Shown here one piece after another: positions 177 through 9,100 of a DNA stretch of 64,000 bases (position 1 is its first letter; the number at the start of each line of letters is the position of its first letter). Made by a program: the position numbers and the translations under genes. The stretch comes from Leucoraja erinacea (taxonomy: Eukaryota). Below the pieces are notes generated by a model, which worked only from the letters and a program-made list of their open reading frames with translations, searched no databases and was not told the origin of the DNA. The stretch spans positions 43,214,001 to 43,278,000 of the forward strand of contig NC_073384.1 in the NCBI RefSeq assembly GCF_028641065.1, read 5' to 3'.

Positions 177-3100
177 GTAAGTATGCCAGTTGTTATCTTT
201 TAAAGTATACAGAGTAGTGACAACACCCTATCACCTAGTGAGTTGAAAGTGGTGTATTTATGACGCACTGCAAATTTAAAAAAAAAACATGTGAAACAGA
301 AACTACTGGTATTGTGATTACAAATATTTCCCCTCTGATTTTCTTTTTCTGCTCTGAATTCCCCCACCACACCTCCAAATAATTTAAATTTGCATCCCTA
401 ATTTTTTATACATTGAATGTACTGAAGCAATTTAAATAAAGAATACTAATGTATGCTTAATTTACCCCCAAGATAATAAAAATGTAAAATAAAAGCTGAG
501 CGGTTAATTCAGGGTAGAAATAGGCTTGATGCAAAAGTGTTTGAGGATAGAAAATTGGCTTCATGGAAGGAAGCAGAAGATGATCGTGGAAGTTTTTTTG
601 GACTGGAGGCCTGTGACTAGTGGTATGCCTCGGGGTTTGGTTTTTGACGCATTGCTATTTGTCATCTGTATCAATGATTTGGATGAGAATGTGCAAGGCA
701 TGATTAGTAAGTTTGCAGTTTACACTAAAGTGGGTGGTTTTGTAAATAATTAAAATGGTTGTCAAAAATTGCAGCAAGATCTTGATCGGTTAGCCAGGTG
801 GGCTGAGGAATGGTTGATGGAGTATATAAGTGCAAGGTGTAACATTTTGTGAAGTCTAACCAGGGCAGGACCTACACAGTGAATGGCAGGTCTCTGGTGA
901 GTTGTAGAGCAGAGGGATCTAGAGGTGCAGATGCATAGTTCCTTTAAAGTGACATCACGGGTGGGTAGGATGGTCAAGAAGGCTTTTGGCTCATTGGCTT
1001 TCATCAGTCCGAGTATTGAGAATACAGGTGCACAACCTTTTATCCGGAGTTCCGGAAACCGAAAAAACTCCGAAAACCGGCCATTTTTTCCAGGATGTCG
1101 TCTGCACACCAAAGCTCGCGTTTGGCGCCAAACTTGACCCGAAACGACCCACGGTCAACCCAGGTCTGTACTACTGTAGTGGCTGCCTCCTCCTCGGAGA
1201 CCGGGGAGACACTTAAACCTCTGTAAATCATTGCTTAAATGTTAGTCAGTTAGTTTGGAGGGCTTTTATGTGAAGGGGGAGGGGAGGGGGTGAAGGGGTA
1301 AACTTTAATTCTTAGTCCCCTACCTGGTCGGAGAGGCGGGGAGCGGTCAATGCCTTACCGGGTCGCCGTGCAGTAAGCTCCGCAGCGCTGGGGCTGCGGG
1401 CGTCCGGCCGTGGGCGGCGCCGGTTGTAGCTCCGACTCCGGCAACTCTACCCCTGGCTGCGAGGCACTCCAAATCCACCGCCGCCCGCGGCCGGACGCCC
1501 GCAGCCCCAGCTCCGCGAATGTTGGGAGCCGGCGGCGTCGCAGCGCTGGGATACCAGCGGGGAGCGGCCAATGCCTTACCGGGTCGCCGTGCGGTAAGCT
1601 CCGGAGTGCTGTGGCCGCCGACTCCCAACATTCGCGGAGCTGGGACTGCGGGCGTCCGGTCGCGGGCGGCGCTGGGTTTGGAGCGCCTCGCAGCCAGGGG
1701 TAGAGTTGCTGGGGTCGGATCTCCAACCGGCGCCGCCCGCGACCGGACGGAGCCCCCAGCTCCGCGATATTGGGAGTCGCCGACCAGGTAGGGGACTAAG
1801 AATCAAAGTTTCCCCCTTCACCCCACCACCACCACCACATAAAATCCCTCCAAACTAACTAACTAACATTTATGCAATGATTTACAATGATTCCCCGGTC
1901 TCAGGGTAGGAGGCAGCCGCTCCAAACTTTTCAAGTCGCCCGCGCTACCTACCTAATCTACGCTAAAAAATCTTCCATTCGGAAATCCGAAAATGTCCGA
2001 AATCCGACAAGTGTCTGGTCCCAAGGCTTTCGGATAAAAGGTTGTGCACCTGTAGAAGTTTGAAGGTTATGTTACAGTTTTGCAAGACATTGTTGAGGCC
2101 ACATTTAAAGTATTGTGTTCAATTTTTATCACTCTTTTACAGGAAGGATAAAGGCGGGTATCACAGCTTTACCCGACTTCTATCGAACATTAAGCTGTTC
2201 AGTCGAAAGAAGGGTCTCAACCCAAAATGTCACCCATTTCTTCTATCCAGAAATGCTGCCTGTTACTCCAGCATTTTGTGTCTATTTTCGATTTAAACCA
2301 GCATCTGCAGTTCTTTCCTACATATTAATCTGCCAGTCCTGACCTTCCCTTTCACAGGTTTCTAATGTCCCAGAATCATGTGCTTAGCAATGCCCTGAGT
2401 TCATCCGCTTTGCATTGAAATAAATGCATTCAATGCAATTCAGCTGCCTTTCCTCGGCCCTTGGCCCGCTCCTGTCTATTGCATTTGCGGTTGTTGACCC
2501 ACCTGTTTCACGGCTGCATTGGATACCGGCCCCCTGGCAATCTAGTTTCTAGTTCCAGAGTGGTACTTGCAAACTTGACTGCCAGAATATAGGTCCCCTC
2601 CAGTTCAGGTGCAATCTGAATCTCATGTACCAGTCACCTCAGTCCCAGAAGAGATCCCAATGGTAAAAAAAACGGAATCTCTGTCCCCTGACCAACTCCT
2701 CAGCCGTGCATTTACCTGTCCTATTTCCCTATTCCTATGCTCAACTAGTATGCGGCACTGGAACTAATCCTGAGATTACTATTCCTGAGGTCCTACTTTT
2801 TAATCTTTGCCTATATTCACTCTGCAGGGCCTTATTCCTTTATGTGCCAATATGCACAATGAATTTGTCAGAGTTAAATTACGTCTACAATTCATTGACC
2901 CACTTTCGGGTTGATTCAGATCCTCTTAAAAACAGATAGCCTTCCTCACTGTCCACTTTCCTATATTTTTTTTGAGTCACCTGCAAGTTTACTAATAACG
3001 TTGACTGCATTATCGTTCAAATCATTCATCTTCTTCTTTTCGTGTCTTTGAAGCTGGTTGGTTATATGATAGTTTCCCATTCCTTTACACAGCCCTTTGC

Positions 3101-6100
3101 GTTTTTATTGAACACTGCAAGATCCTTTGGGCTGCACTGGTTGGGTAGTAGGGGGGCAGACAAGGCAGTGTTGCATTGTATGGTCCTCTTCTCCACATTC
3201 ACAGGTGGTTTGGCCAGTTTCATAGCTCCATCTGGCCATGGCAGCATTTGATCGCCCTGTTCCTGTTCTCAGGAGGTTGAGCATCTTCCAGTGGACCCAT
3301 GGTGCTTCTGAGCCCGGAGGGAGGGCTTCAGAAGGAGGGATACATAGTCAGTAGGAGGGGGGTCGTCCTCAAGCCTTTTTGTCCATAGTTGGAGTCTGGT
3401 TTCTTCCTGTGATGCTATTAGGGGCTGGACATGGCTGAGAAAGCTTCTCCTGGACTTCAGCCGTTGGGCCGGGGGTACACGTCCGTAGAGGAGGTGGCGT
3501 TCATCACTGGTGGCCTTGGTCATCTCTACTCGGCTGGCGACTTCCCGTCTCACATCAGCAGGGGCAATGCCAGCGAGGAGGTGCAGGTTGTTTATGTTGG
3601 TGGGCTTCAAGCAGCCAGTGATTGAGCGGCAGGTGTTATTCAAAGCTGGGTCTAGTTTCTTGGCATGGGATGATCTCTCCCAAACAGGACACGCATACTC
3701 CGCAGAGGAGTAGCACAGGGCCAGAGCAGTAGATCTTAATGTGTGTGCTGTGGCTCCCCATTTGGAGTTGGTCAGCTTCCGGAGGATGTTATTTCGGGAG
3801 TTAACTTTCAGTTTGGTGTTTTTGAAGTGTTCCTTATAGGAGAGAGTGCGATCCAGTGTTACACCGAGGTAGACAGGGTTGGTGCAGTGCTCAAGAGGTG
3901 TTCCAGACCATGTGATGTTAAGGGGTCTGTTTGCTTCCTGGTTTCTGAGATGGAACGAGCAGGCTTGGGTCTTCGAAGGGTTTGCGTGTAGGTGGTTGCG
4001 CTCGTAGTAGAGGTGTAGCTCATCTAGGGCTGAGGTGAGATTCGCTTCTACAGCTTCAAACGTACTCTCTTGGGATGTTACACAGAGGTCGTCGGCGTAG
4101 ATGAACCGCTCAGTGTTCTGGTCCATTGGCTGGTCATTGTTGTAGATGTTATATAGCAGTGGAGCCAGCACACTACCTTGAGGCAAGCCATTCCGTTGTC
4201 GTCGCCAGCGACTTTGCTTGTTGTTAAGGACAACATAGAAGCGCCTATCTTTCAGGAGGGCTCCGATGAGGTCCGTGAGTGCCAGGTCTTTTGTATTCTC
4301 CAAGATCTTTTTTAGGAGGAGGCAGTGATTCACATTGTCAACCGCGGCAGACAGATCAACAAAGACGGCTCCTGTCACCAGTCCTTTCTGGAACCCGTCT
4401 TCAATGTGCTGTGTGAGATTCAGAAGTTGACTTGTTGTGGATTTGCCAGGTAGGAATCCAGCTTGTTGAGGGATGATGGCTGGTTCAGCGACTGGGGCAA
4501 GCCTGTTGAGGATCAGGCACTCAAACAGCTTGTACGGGTGGCATAGCAGGGAGATTGGGCGGAAGCTCTTTGCATATGCTGGATTTTTACCGGGTTTTAG
4601 AAGAGCGATAATTTTGGTTTTCCTCCAGATCTTTGGGATGTTTCTTGTCAGCATGCAATTGTTCATCAGCTCAAGGACCCACTTCCGTGTCAGAGGTCCA
4701 AACTGCTTGATCTCCTCTATGAAAATATTGTCCAGGCCGATGGCTTTGCCAGTCTTGAGGGCTTTGATGCTGATATTGAGCTCTTCAAGGGAGAACGGCT
4801 CAGTCAGTCCGGTGTTTTGGGAGTGCTGAAGTCGGTGTGCTTTTGGTCTTGGCTGTTTTGTGGTGGATTTCCCGTTGAGCAGCAACTGATACGCAACTTT
4901 GTTGGCCGTGGTGGTATACTGTTGATGTGTTGGTGTTGATGGGTCATTGCTGATTTTTCGGATGAGGCTCCATGCCTTTTTGCTGTTTTTTGCCATATCA
5001 GTTGTCTCCAGTAGAGTTTGCCATTTCTGCTGGCGGCATTCTGATAGGGAGGTCATGAGTCTTTCACCTACTTCCATGGTGCTTTCAGCAAAGGGGTCAT
5101 ATTCGTAGAGCTGTTGGTATTGCTCATATATTTCGCTGCTTAGAGTGTCAAGGCCGGGGATGTATTGAGTGCGGCAGCCTCTCGGGATGTTCTTCCGGGC
5201 TGCCTGGTGCACTAACTTGGTGAAGATTTGATAGTTTTTGGGGTCCGCTGGAAGGTGGGCGATCTTCCCTTCAAGATCTTCTTGGAAACCAGGCCAGTTC
5301 GCTTTCCCCAAGTTGAATCTTCTCTGGAAAGGAACTGTGGCTGGGGTAACTGCAGCATTGACTGTAAAGTCAATGAGGCGGTGTTGGGTTTTTGGCAGTG
5401 GCTTCAGTACCAGCTTCTTGCCCAAACCAGAGATGCTGTGGCTGACAAACGCGATATCAGGGTTGTAGCCGGCTTTCCATCGCCCACTATTAAAGGACTT
5501 TGGTTGTTTGGCATTATGGATCAGGTAGAGCTGGTTGGTTTCGGCCCATGCTTCCACTGCATCTCCATCAGCGTTGTTCCCGGCTTAAACCCCATTGTGA
5601 GCTGTGGCTGTTGAAGTCTCCAATCACTATCCTTGGTTTCCCAGATGATGGTATTTCTGGCATCAGGAAAGGTGTGGGAGGTGGCTTGTAGACGGAGGTG
5701 ATGGTAATTCCTCTGAGCTCAGCGGTTAGGACCTGAATGTTGTTTTCATCGCTCTTTGATGTTGATTCGATGATTGTCCCGTTTTTTGCAAGCATGACGC
5801 TTCCATGTTTCTCATGTGGTCTTTCAATGAGGGTGGTCATGCTTCCACTCGAGGGCGGGGATGTTTGGATCCGCGGTGAGTTTCTTGGAGGCAGAGAATA
5901 TCACACTGATGCTCTCTGCAGAGTTGGGCAACAAGTTCTTTAGTTGCAGACAGTCCTTCAACATTTAGAGATATGATGGTCAAAGCTGGCCTTGGGGGCG
6001 GGTGTTGGCCTCTCTTCCTATTCCGGGCTGGGCTACTGCCATTTGTTGGGCTTCTGGACATCATTTGTCTTTCGGCTTTCGGCTTGGCTTCAAAGTGTTT

Positions 6101-9100
6101 GGTAGAATTCGCAAGTAATTTTGGTGATATTACTTGACGGGGATCGCAACGTGAACGCTTCTACCTTGACCCCCAAAATCATTCATGTAATTGACCAACA
6201 AAAGGGAACCAGCACATATCACTCCAGCACTCTGCTGGGCATGGGCTTCCAATCAGTAAAACAATTCTCCAGTACCATCTTTAGACTCCTTCCACCAAGC
6301 CAATTATTAATCTAGTTGGCTAGTTCACCCTAGTCCAATGTATTCTAACTTCCGGACTGGGGATAGATTATATAAGTTTAATGCAGGATACGCAAATGGT
6401 GCGTCGCTACTGGCAGGCAGGGTGTGGATTCAGTACTTCCCTGTTTATGTAAGCTCCTCAGAGATTTGTATAGAGCAGCAGATATGATGAGGTTAAAGAA
6501 GCAAACTAAGAAATTATCATGCAAAGTGTGAAATTATCATGCCAAGTACAGAAGCTAGTTGACTGTTTCAATGCAAGTTTGCCAGTACTTAAGGTAGCTA
6601 AGCTGCCCAGATAGAAAATGCAGTTGGGCACAATCTTCTAATTCTACGATAGCAGCACCAAAGTGTTGCACCATTTTTCAAAAGGTATTTGGGGACAACT
6701 TTGACAAAAAATATTTGTGCTTGCATGGTTACGTTTTTAGAATCAATAACCAAGCTACTGGAAAATAATGATTTAGTTTAGTTTAGAGATACAGCGTTGG
6801 AACAGGCCCTTCAGCCCATTCAGTCTACGCCGACCATTGAGTGCCCATACACTAGTTCTAGCCTTCACACTAGGAACAATTTACAGAAGTCAAATAACCG
6901 ACAATCATGCACATTTTTGGAATGTGGGAGGAAACTAGAGCACCCGGAGAAAACTCGCGTGATCATAAGGAGAATGTACAAACTCTGTACAGACTGCATC
7001 CAAAGTCAGGATCAAATCTGGTCTCTGGCACTGTAAGGCAGCAACTCTACCATTGCGCTGCTGCTCCAATCAAGATGTGCCAGCACAGGTTCATTTCAGG
7101 CAAATATGTGTTAAATCTCAGTAAATGTTCTCCGACAAGATCAGGAATGGAATGTTGCTACACGTGACAATCGACTAAACTGAACTTAGCCACATAAAAA
7201 TGTGGGTAAATGTCTCCCCCTATAGTATATCTGAAAAGGCAATCTAATACAGTATGATTGCAAAGAATGTAAAGCCCAGTATAATTTCCCCTCACCACTA
7301 CCCAACTTCCCTATTTGAGTTATTAGTTATTTTATATGTATTGTCCCTGGTTTTGTTTTCTCCGATATATGGAAGCATTTTTGTACACCTATTAATTTAT
7401 TTCCTTTTGTACCGTTTTGAACTACTCTTCCAAGAAACGTAGTATTTCTTTCTTTCAAAGTGGTCAACATTAGACTCTGATATGGTGTCACCCATTCTAA
7501 GTTGTCTTTTATTTCGTTGAAATCTTTCCTCTCTTATTTTATCTTTAATTTGTTGTCATTTGTACATTTTGAAATCATAATGATATCTGAGTCTGTAATT
7601 TTATATGAATGGTGAATGTTTGTGATCTCAGCACCAGTTTGAATGGAAAATCACTTTTCATGTTTTGTCAGTCTGAATAAATCAGAGTCCTTGATATATT
7701 TTGTATTTTGATTAGGTGTCTATTCTGAATTTTTTGTAAGCATGGTTATTTTATGGCTATTCCGAGATGGATCCCAACCACCCTGCAATAACAAAATGGC
7801 CTTGTCTACATCTAATTGCTCACCTATCTTTTCGTTTCATTCTTATGATGTGACATTACACGGGGACTGACCATTAGGATTTCTGCATTGCCGCATAGAA
7901 AGCTCTGTGTTATTTTTCAGTTACTTCTTGAATTTCTCAGTGCCCAACTGGAGATCGATGTATTCATCCATCTGTTGTTGTAATCTGCCAGCTAGCATAG
8001 CTACAGCATGTTTGTTGTAGAAGTATTTGTTCTGTCAGTGTTCCACATTCTTCTAAAACACCTTATTATCCATTTTATGTTTTATTGTCGCAAACCACTG
8101 TGTATTCAGTGCCACAAGCTAACATATTCCCTTTTTGGCTTGGGTTTTATTTTGAAACCAAAATGTTTCACAAGCTCTTGCTACCTATGTTCTCTGCACT
8201 CCTATCTTTATTATGAGCATTTATTATCTCTTTAAAATGTGTCAATGCTTGGCCCTGTCAGTAGCCACATGCATAAGCTTGATCATGTATAACCATGAAA
8301 GAAAGCAAAAGTCATACCGGCCTCAGCAGACCCAGCTAAGATGCTGGTTTGCTGCATCAAAGTCCATATTTCTGGTCCAGGACTCTGTATCCAAACTGCA
8401 AAAGTGAGAACTGAAGTAAAGAGGGAAGGACGAAGAGGAAATGTTTGTCGTAGGGTGAGATCAAATGCAGACGGATGTGATGAGTGTAGGAAGGGCATCT
8501 TGGTTGGCATGGGCATGTTGGGCTGAAGGGCATGTTTCCATGCTGTTTGACTTTGACTCTAATTGCTCAATTTAATATTCAACTAAAGAGTAACTTGATA
8601 CTTGAGACACAGGAGACAGCAGATACTAGAATCTTGAGTGGTGGAGCAAATCAGTGGGACAGGCAACATCCATCGAGGGAAACGGACAGATGAGCTATTT
8701 CCTACCAAAAACATCGCTTGTCTATGTAATTCAACAAATGATGACAGACCTGCTGCATTCCTCCACCTTGTTCTTTGCTCAAGATCTGGATGCTGTTTTG
8801 GTTAGATACTTGTTTGTGTCCAATCCAGTCAAGGAAAATACTTTACATGAATACAATCAAGCTGTCCACAGTCAAGGGAACAGCATTTAGTGCACAGATA
8901 CAAAAACAAAGTCCGATTAAGGATAGTTCAAAAGATTCTAGTGAGGTAGATGGGAGGTCAGGTTGATGAGAGAATGATTCAGTTGCCTGACAACAGCTGG
9001 AAAAATAAATGTTCTTCAATCTGGAGGTATTTGTTTTCAACCTTCTGTATCTCCTGCTGATGGGTGTTTCCAAACCAGGCTGTGATGCATCCCAGTAAGA

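Follow-up and report, generated by a model that had tools for sequence, protein, structure and literature searches.

A CPEB3-type ribozyme fold at the 5′ end of a LINE copy in Leucoraja erinacea

Where could the self-cleaving ribozyme of the mammalian CPEB3 gene have come from? The question is raised by a 64,000-nucleotide stretch of Leucoraja erinacea DNA (assembly GCF_028641065.1, contig NC_073384.1, positions 43,214,001 to 43,278,000; hereafter the window), in which a long interspersed nuclear element (LINE) starts with 74 nt that score as a CPEB3 ribozyme. We consider it very probable that the minus strand of the window from 6174 to 3030 is a dead copy of a 3,145-nt non-LTR retrotransposon (one without long terminal repeats), whose single open reading frame (ORF) encodes an APE endonuclease and a reverse transcriptase (RT) and whose first 74 nt are a CPEB3-type self-cleaving ribozyme, predicted to cut 5′ of its first nucleotide (G1). 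All features of the element described below lie on the minus strand.

Ribozymes like that of hepatitis delta virus (HDV) at the 5′ ends of LINEs are an already known kind. Those of R2, RTE, baggins and L1Tc/Ingi lie, like the one in the window, at the exact 5′ end of a non-LTR element (PMC6765202, PMC5786205). In these elements too, the sequences upstream differ between copies, and the presumed role of the ribozyme is to free the element RNA from a co-transcript. They resemble the CPEB3 ribozyme in fold only, and the other HDV-type models of Rfam miss the window ribozyme. Our literature search, outside which lay subscription papers and supplements, found no report of a CPEB3-type ribozyme in a retrotransposon or of a retrotransposon origin of the CPEB3 ribozyme. 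The literature that we found treats this ribozyme as a mammalian feature and does not discuss its origin; in Bendixsen 2021 (PMC8233481), "origin" and "retrotranspos" each occur 0 times. What the window adds is a full-length protein-coding element with a complete, P4-bearing and CPEB3-scoring form of the ribozyme. Since a LINE ribozyme passes the curated CPEB3 model and has covarying cousins in other LINEs, the origin of the CPEB3 ribozyme becomes a testable question. A LINE origin, if true, would parallel the proposed mobile-element origin of intronic hammerheads.

A 74-nt head of the CPEB3 sequence type

Within the 64-kb window, CPEB3_ribozyme (RF00622) was the sole Rfam family above threshold. 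The model matched 6185..6101, a reported match that takes in 11 leader nt upstream of G1; its score of 56.0 bits exceeds the gathering score of 35, with E = 1.8e-12 over the entire window. No other HDV, drz or further ribozyme family was found in 5900-6400 by a permissive Rfam scan, even at E ≤ 10. A first-pass annotation, made from the letters alone, had called the ribozyme strikingly CPEB3-like and had set beforehand, as a refutation test, a comparison between the CPEB3 model and generic HDV-like models. The resemblance came through that comparison, with 56 bits for the CPEB3 model and nothing at E ≤ 10 for the generic ones.

By hand count on the printed RF00622 alignment, the window and the Rfam consensus agree at 46 of the 64 positions aligned from G1 on, or at 39 of 49 when P4 is left out. 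The unpaired core is identical throughout (13/13, made up of L3 with 7/7, J1/4 with 2/2 and J4/2 with 4/4). One pair in P1 and two pairs in P2 are changed on both sides and still pair, and one P1 pair and one P3 pair turn into G·U. The 11 model positions upstream of the cleavage site are mismatched apart from two letters.

The fold was parsed with an HDV descriptor of our own (P1 of 7 bp, P3 of 3 bp, L3 of 6-9 nt, P2 of at least 4 bp, P4 of at least 3 bp, and a C placed 3-5 nt ahead of the 3′ strand of P2). Over 6174..6101, it returned the very helices, coordinates and junctions (J1/2, J1/4 and J4/2) that the first-pass annotation had proposed, with the nested double pseudoknot in the canonical order P1/P2/P3/P4 and all 25 base pairs intact. 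P1 (7 bp) joins 6174-6168 to 6145-6139, with G1 paired to C 6139; it is seen in the descriptor parse and in the Rfam alignment, and its columns covary in 15 distinct sequences. J1/2, of 2 nt in the descriptor parse, separates the 5′ strands of P1 and P2. The pseudoknotted helix P2 (7 bp, 6165-6159 with 6107-6101 in the descriptor parse) has four of its seven pairs changing on both sides across relatives. P3, as the descriptor places it (3 bp including one G·U, 6158-6156 with 6148-6146), encloses L3 (7 nt, 6155-6149), which equals the Rfam consensus and whose seven letters recur unchanged in 9 of the 15 distinct sequences that make up the alignment A6 described below. J1/4 (GU, 6137..6138), also equal to the consensus, corresponds to the nucleotides with which L3 forms the short P1.1/T1 pairing in CPEB3; T1 is described in PMC9901934. 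P4 (6112..6136) is a hairpin with an 8-bp stem (6136-6129 with 6119-6112) and a 9-nt loop, found by the descriptor and in the minimum-free-energy fold; the latter, which allows nested pairs only, includes P1 and P4 (-19.6 kcal/mol, z = -2.1). J4/2 (CGAA, 6108..6111) has 4 nt. Its first base, C 6111, is the putative catalytic C and falls on the consensus C within the CGAA segment of the CPEB3 model, just as G 6174 aligns with the consensus position at +1.

Judged by its sequence, 6174..6101 holds a complete ribozyme with the HDV fold and of the CPEB3 sequence type, which is predicted to cleave 5′ of G 6174; R1, a covariance model derived from this sequence alone, gave it 109.8 bits. With the mammalian CPEB3 ribozyme it shares the HDV-type double pseudoknot, the identical L3, J1/4 and J4/2, equal junction lengths and equal strand lengths in P1, P2 and P3, and the differences in P1 and P2 keep the pairing. 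The two part company in four respects. The partner of G1 is C in the window, whereas it is U in the CPEB3 consensus, a difference on which the first-pass annotation is silent; P4 has 8 bp and a 9-nt loop in the window, compared with 7 pairs and a shorter loop in the CPEB3 model; and upstream of the cleavage site the window lacks similarity to the model. Moreover, RF00622 stands for a ribozyme in the CPEB3-gene intron of a mammal, whereas the window copy lies outside a CPEB3 intron and forms the first 74 nt of a LINE flanked by target-site duplications (TSDs). The window ribozyme is thus a sequence relative of the CPEB3 ribozyme and not its orthologue.

The LINE and its ribozyme-headed relatives

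The ribozyme is the exact 5′ end of a TSD-flanked APE+RT LINE. The same 11 nt stand at 6176..6186 (5′ copy of the TSD) and at 3019..3029 (3′ copy), and a single T at 6175, outside both the target and the fold, precedes G1; the element therefore runs from 6174 to 3030 and measures 3,145 nt. The first-pass annotation had likewise put G1 one base from the TSD and the ribozyme at the tip of the LINE. Contigs of a DNA-type run (X15) have loose ends at 6175, 3028 and 3029, which confirmed both element boundaries, and the contigs of other copies diverge beyond 6175.

We fetched 80 metagenome loci that encode relatives of the LINE (numbered L001 onward). Rfam at its gathering threshold yielded 0 matches in the 20 of these 80 that were scanned because they bear the N-terminus, and L035 was scanned at this threshold only. 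R1 matched L066 (39.7 bits, E = 1.7e-7), L037 (38.0 bits) and L030 (30.6 bits), with E values between 1.7e-7 and 3.6e-5 for these three, and more weakly L076, L077 and L078. With a second model, R2, built from the R1 finds, 15 metagenome loci were matched at E ≤ 2e-4, as was L035 at E = 2. Thirty-one loci retain the N-terminus together with 260 nt or more of upstream sequence, and 13 of them have a head on the coding strand. Twelve of these 13 heads lie 200-244 nt before the inferred first residue, the exception being that of L017 at -24; the spacing in the window is 227 nt. The heads of L076 (711-779) and L077 (2460-2528) are identical and have an identical 25-nt upstream flank; the two represent a single locus in two metagenome records.

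Eight complete heads, including that of the window, could be compared at their 5′ ends. Similarity between copies begins at G1 and the upstream flanks are unrelated, so the predicted cleavage site coincides with the 5′ boundary of the element, as it does in the window by the TSD and the loose ends at 6175. A T just before G1 was found in seven of the eight (window 6175, L037, L030, L023, L017, L052 and L027), or in six of the seven outside the window; to judge from the sequences, it may stem from a non-templated A that the RT attaches where a G1-terminated template ends. AAG-rich 3′ tails like that of the window occur in the metagenome LINEs L017, L024, L045, L077 and L031, and TSDs of 10 nt and 8 nt abut the 5′-truncated heads of L024 and L077, respectively. 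The heads of L023 (979-1049) and L066 (2296-2366) are on the other strand (minus), and no LINE coding sequence comes after them; they may belong to non-autonomous elements with such a head in another organism.

The first-pass annotation had called for a covariation check across Vingi/Ingi families, and homologous, covarying ribozymes do head related LINEs in metagenome DNA. The alignment A6 (MAFFT) comprised all 16 hits, 15 of them distinct, with truncated and degenerate rows kept; P1, P3, the pseudoknotted P2 and a 6-bp P4 were tested, P4 in the register of the metagenome sequences, so that the window's own P4, which is in another register, counts as mostly unpaired. Standard pairs formed in 87.4% of 302 cells, compared with 40-48% when the partners were slid by 1-3 columns. 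Changes on both sides were seen in 11 of 23 pairs, covariation was present in all four helices, and 0 of 500 shuffles attained any one of the five measures, with the caveat that the sequences are related to one another. In a smaller alignment fitted to the model (A3), 95.2% of the 83 cells were paired, and both sides had changed in 8 of the 17 pairs. The C of the J4/2 type, 4 nt before the 3′ strand of P2, occurs in 14 of the 15 distinct A6 sequences (L027 is deleted there), and L3 and J1/4 are almost unchanged throughout the metagenome set. Two metagenome subtypes could be distinguished, one with a 7-bp P1 and the other with a 6-bp P1 that is one letter shorter on both strands. Compensatory changes across relatives argue for selection on the fold.

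When the CPEB3 model was applied to the metagenome heads, it gave 25.2 bits for L037 (E = 0.0084) and 22.1 bits for L066 (E = 0.21), and an E-value scan of the other 12 ribozyme loci gave nothing at E ≤ 10. With its cousins at or below 25.2 bits and the window at 56.0 bits, the window variant is unusually CPEB3-like. The fold and core are thus old within the LINE group, and it is the window variant that looks like CPEB3. A scan with a 20-base core pattern gave 1 match in viral contigs and 10 in bacterial or archaeal contigs, and these were discarded as chance: all lie in GC-rich, prokaryote-like DNA, their number is about the chance level by our own estimate, and none of the 7 scanned among these 11 loci was scored by the CPEB3 model. 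Discarded as well was a supposed ribozyme remnant upstream of the ORF in L004, where the pairwise alignment is noise-like and R1 with its filters off finds nothing.

Of 8,000 candidates scored, 651 are related to the ORF product at E ≤ 1e-3, and the best 120 are 47-86% identical. Named relatives come from Branchiostoma, Diaphorina, Lepidoptera, sea urchins, Anolis and teleosts. A protein scan of viral contigs yielded no relative. In Pfam, only RVT_1 and Exo_endo_phos were recognized in the window pieces and in the full-length relatives, 4 of 4 of which lack RNase H. Among solved structures, LINE-1 ORF2p and the R2 proteins come nearest and are matched over the RT only. A tree of the RT region (query-anchored FastTree, midpoint-rooted, 94 rows, L067 dropped for having fewer than 150 aligned residues), drawn from these relatives rather than from named clade references, places all ribozyme-bearing metagenome loci in one clade, apart from that of the window. 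The clade of the window contains P0002, L004, P0001 and P0004 together with named teleost, Anolis, amphioxus, urchin and insect proteins.

The element has a single ORF with APE and RT and without RNase H, a composition that it shares with the Vingi clade and that is common to many other LINE clades. Vingi LINEs are, like the window element, compact at about 3.1 kb (PMC13708176); Vingi-2_Gav measures 3,128 nt, compared with 3,145 nt for the window element (Kojima 2018, PMC5786205). Vingi 5′ ends have been reused in short interspersed nuclear elements (SINEs), and the module reused in one of them, the 5′-terminal nt 2-74 of Vingi-2_Gav, has the same length as the window ribozyme (PMC5786205). 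These features of composition and length are compatible with calling the element Vingi-like, a putative assignment. Passages of a 2026 review on gene writing with Vingi-1_Acar refer to the native 5′ untranslated region (UTR) and to no ribozyme for Vingi (PMC13708176). Vingi-type gene-writing systems keep the native 5′ UTR (same source); if a ribozyme starts this UTR, a leader placed in front of it would be trimmed.

Predicted cleavage and the origin of the CPEB3 ribozyme

By analogy with R2, RTE and L1Tc, for which the mechanism of the 5′-end ribozyme is established (PMC6765202), we provide a putative life cycle for the family. The element, which has no recognised promoter of its own, would be transcribed within a longer host or read-through RNA. 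The ribozyme would fold co-transcriptionally and cut 5′ of G1, and the released RNA would start at G1. This RNA would then be translated, any role of the ribozyme in translation being conjectural, and, starting from the AAG-rich 3′ tail, be copied into DNA through target-primed reverse transcription. Insertions of full length would so begin at G1 beside the TSD, here with one extra T: if the head cuts the LINE RNA at G1, the DNA copies of the element begin at G1.

Several observations weigh against this reading. The ORF is broken, and the window copy itself is therefore not mobile. The most active CPEB3 sequences typically have a G1·U36 wobble (PMC8233481), and a G1·U wobble closing P1 is also a feature expected of the HDV fold class; the window pairs G1 6174 with C 6139 instead. 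Our literature search turned up nothing on what U36C does in CPEB3. Over 406,880 bases (all loci), our descriptor returned 75 matches, compared with 44-55 in three shuffles, which is near noise; it therefore serves as a check of the parse, and as a lead to L066, and is not evidence by itself, and the significance comes from Rfam. Among the metagenome loci of the window's own clade that keep their 5′ regions (L001, L002 and L004), no such ribozyme was found, even with filters off. Finally, an oligo-dT RNA run (X24), the only RNA run with coverage, covers the whole element and the flank beyond 6175 at low depth and in both directions alike, with about 1-3 reads over the head and no pile of RNA 5′ ends at 6174. 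These reads did not show such ends, the depth being too low and both directions being read alike.

The dead ORF of the window copy, the G1-C pair and the missing pile of RNA 5′ ends at G1 would also be expected if the fold were a relic, inactive today in this copy or in the whole family, and the 5′ ends were set by an internal promoter, as with Pr77 of L1Tc, whose 77-nt head is both promoter and ribozyme (PMC3383444). We regard such a relic as improbable. All 25 base pairs of the window copy are intact, the compensatory changes in relatives point to selection on the fold, and both variants of the first pair occur among relatives (G·U in L037, L023, L017, L052 and L027; G-C in L030 and L066). 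A promoter role, moreover, would not exclude cleavage. A LINE that begins with a self-cleaving ribozyme thus remains our preferred reading, and the relation of that ribozyme to the mammalian one has to be weighed separately.

Shared ancestry with CPEB3 is plausible on the sequences compared. The mammalian CPEB3 ribozyme would then have been exapted from the 5′ end of a LINE of this lineage that had landed in a CPEB3 intron of a mammalian ancestor, and we give this account about an even chance. A model that Rfam names for mammals gives the window 56 bits, and the 13/13 identities in the unpaired core, the equal junction lengths and P1/P2/P3 strand lengths (P4 differs) and the pair-preserving helix changes go beyond a class in which only about six nucleotides are invariant (PMC8256844). 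The CPEB3 scores are graded, from 56.0 for the window through 25.2 for L037 and 22.1 for L066 to nothing at E ≤ 10 for the other 12. Additionally, the ribozyme is old within LINEs: a homologous head is found with a clade of proteins that share only 26-47% identity with P0001. This makes the direction from LINE to host gene the more economical one. The LINE clade of the window includes proteins named from Anolis and teleosts. Ancient Vingi traces exist in the human genome (PMC5753468, PMC9004415), so that an insertion in a mammalian ancestor is conceivable. However, a short and strongly constrained RNA can keep or regain similarity, and the similarity stops short of the 11 nt upstream of G1 in the model, which is expected under either view. 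Convergence, by which the LINE and CPEB3 ribozymes arrived separately at the same core since few alternatives are tolerated by this subtype of the HDV fold, strikes us as possible and as the less probable of the two. In its favour, L3 and J1/4 are nearly fixed across very divergent LINE hosts, which indicates strong constraint, and, by hand count, the helices of the window depart from the consensus at 12 of 46 and at 6 of 18 positions in the alignment. Yet the fold alone does not impose the sequence, since the other HDV-like families of Rfam do not match; the equal junction lengths and core identities exceed the invariant nucleotides of the class; and the chance core-pattern matches in bacterial contigs went unscored by the CPEB3 model in the 7 of 11 loci scanned. 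We speculate, at the same even odds as for common descent, that the mammal-restricted "orphan" CPEB3 ribozyme is a domesticated LINE 5′ end, of which only the self-cleaving head survived and was kept for regulation of the host gene, and that the LINE lineage had this ribozyme type long before mammals.

Coding region and flanks of the window copy

Downstream of the ribozyme, a 36-nt linker (6065..6100) completes a 5′ UTR of 110 nt. The frame opened by the ATG at 6064-6062 is that of the protein alignment, which starts at 5941. The single LINE ORF (3062..6064, APE then RT) was delimited by tblastn of the full-length relative P0001 and ends with the TAA stop codon at 3064-3062; residues 3-963 of P0001 map to 5941..3065 at 54% identity. 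A piece of the APE endonuclease domain lies at 5568..5840, where Exo_endo_phos_2 of Pfam matches with E = 7.5e-4, below the curated cut-off, and residues 28-122 of P0001 align. The reverse-transcriptase domain RVT_1 (PF00078, E = 1.3e-29) occupies 3857..4591, corresponding to residues 323-567 of a 762-aa ORF piece at 3269-5557.

The reading frame of the window copy is interrupted by seven main-frame stops (5839-5587 and 3271), and a piece in a second frame covers 5867-5589. The changes of frame sit in the APE region and near the C-terminus, and most other copies, as represented by contigs, differ by 1-nt indels at the break sites 5841, 5587, 3346 and 3151. The 3′ UTR (3030..3061) has 32 nt and includes the terminal tail GAAAAGAAGAAG, which ends at 3030 and is followed directly by the 3′ copy of the TSD; the contigs of the family diverge at 3028/3029. 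In X15, contig depth was about 37-71 in the 5′ half of the ORF and 2,122 at the 3′ end, with 146 in the bin of the ribozyme head. The rise toward the 3′ end is the profile usually seen in LINE families with 5′ truncation.

A few minor observations concern the surroundings. The LINE appears to have been inserted in an older, degraded RT-like stretch on the same strand (6187-6400 and 2900-3018), and the translations of these two flanks join across the target site into a putative RT-like motif. In the metagenome locus L019, a long hairpin at 4155-4242 was matched by several microRNA models below their thresholds. Elsewhere in the window, 1347-1821 is GC-rich and has long overlapping ORFs on both strands, and a 35-nt poly-C run occupies 62-96.

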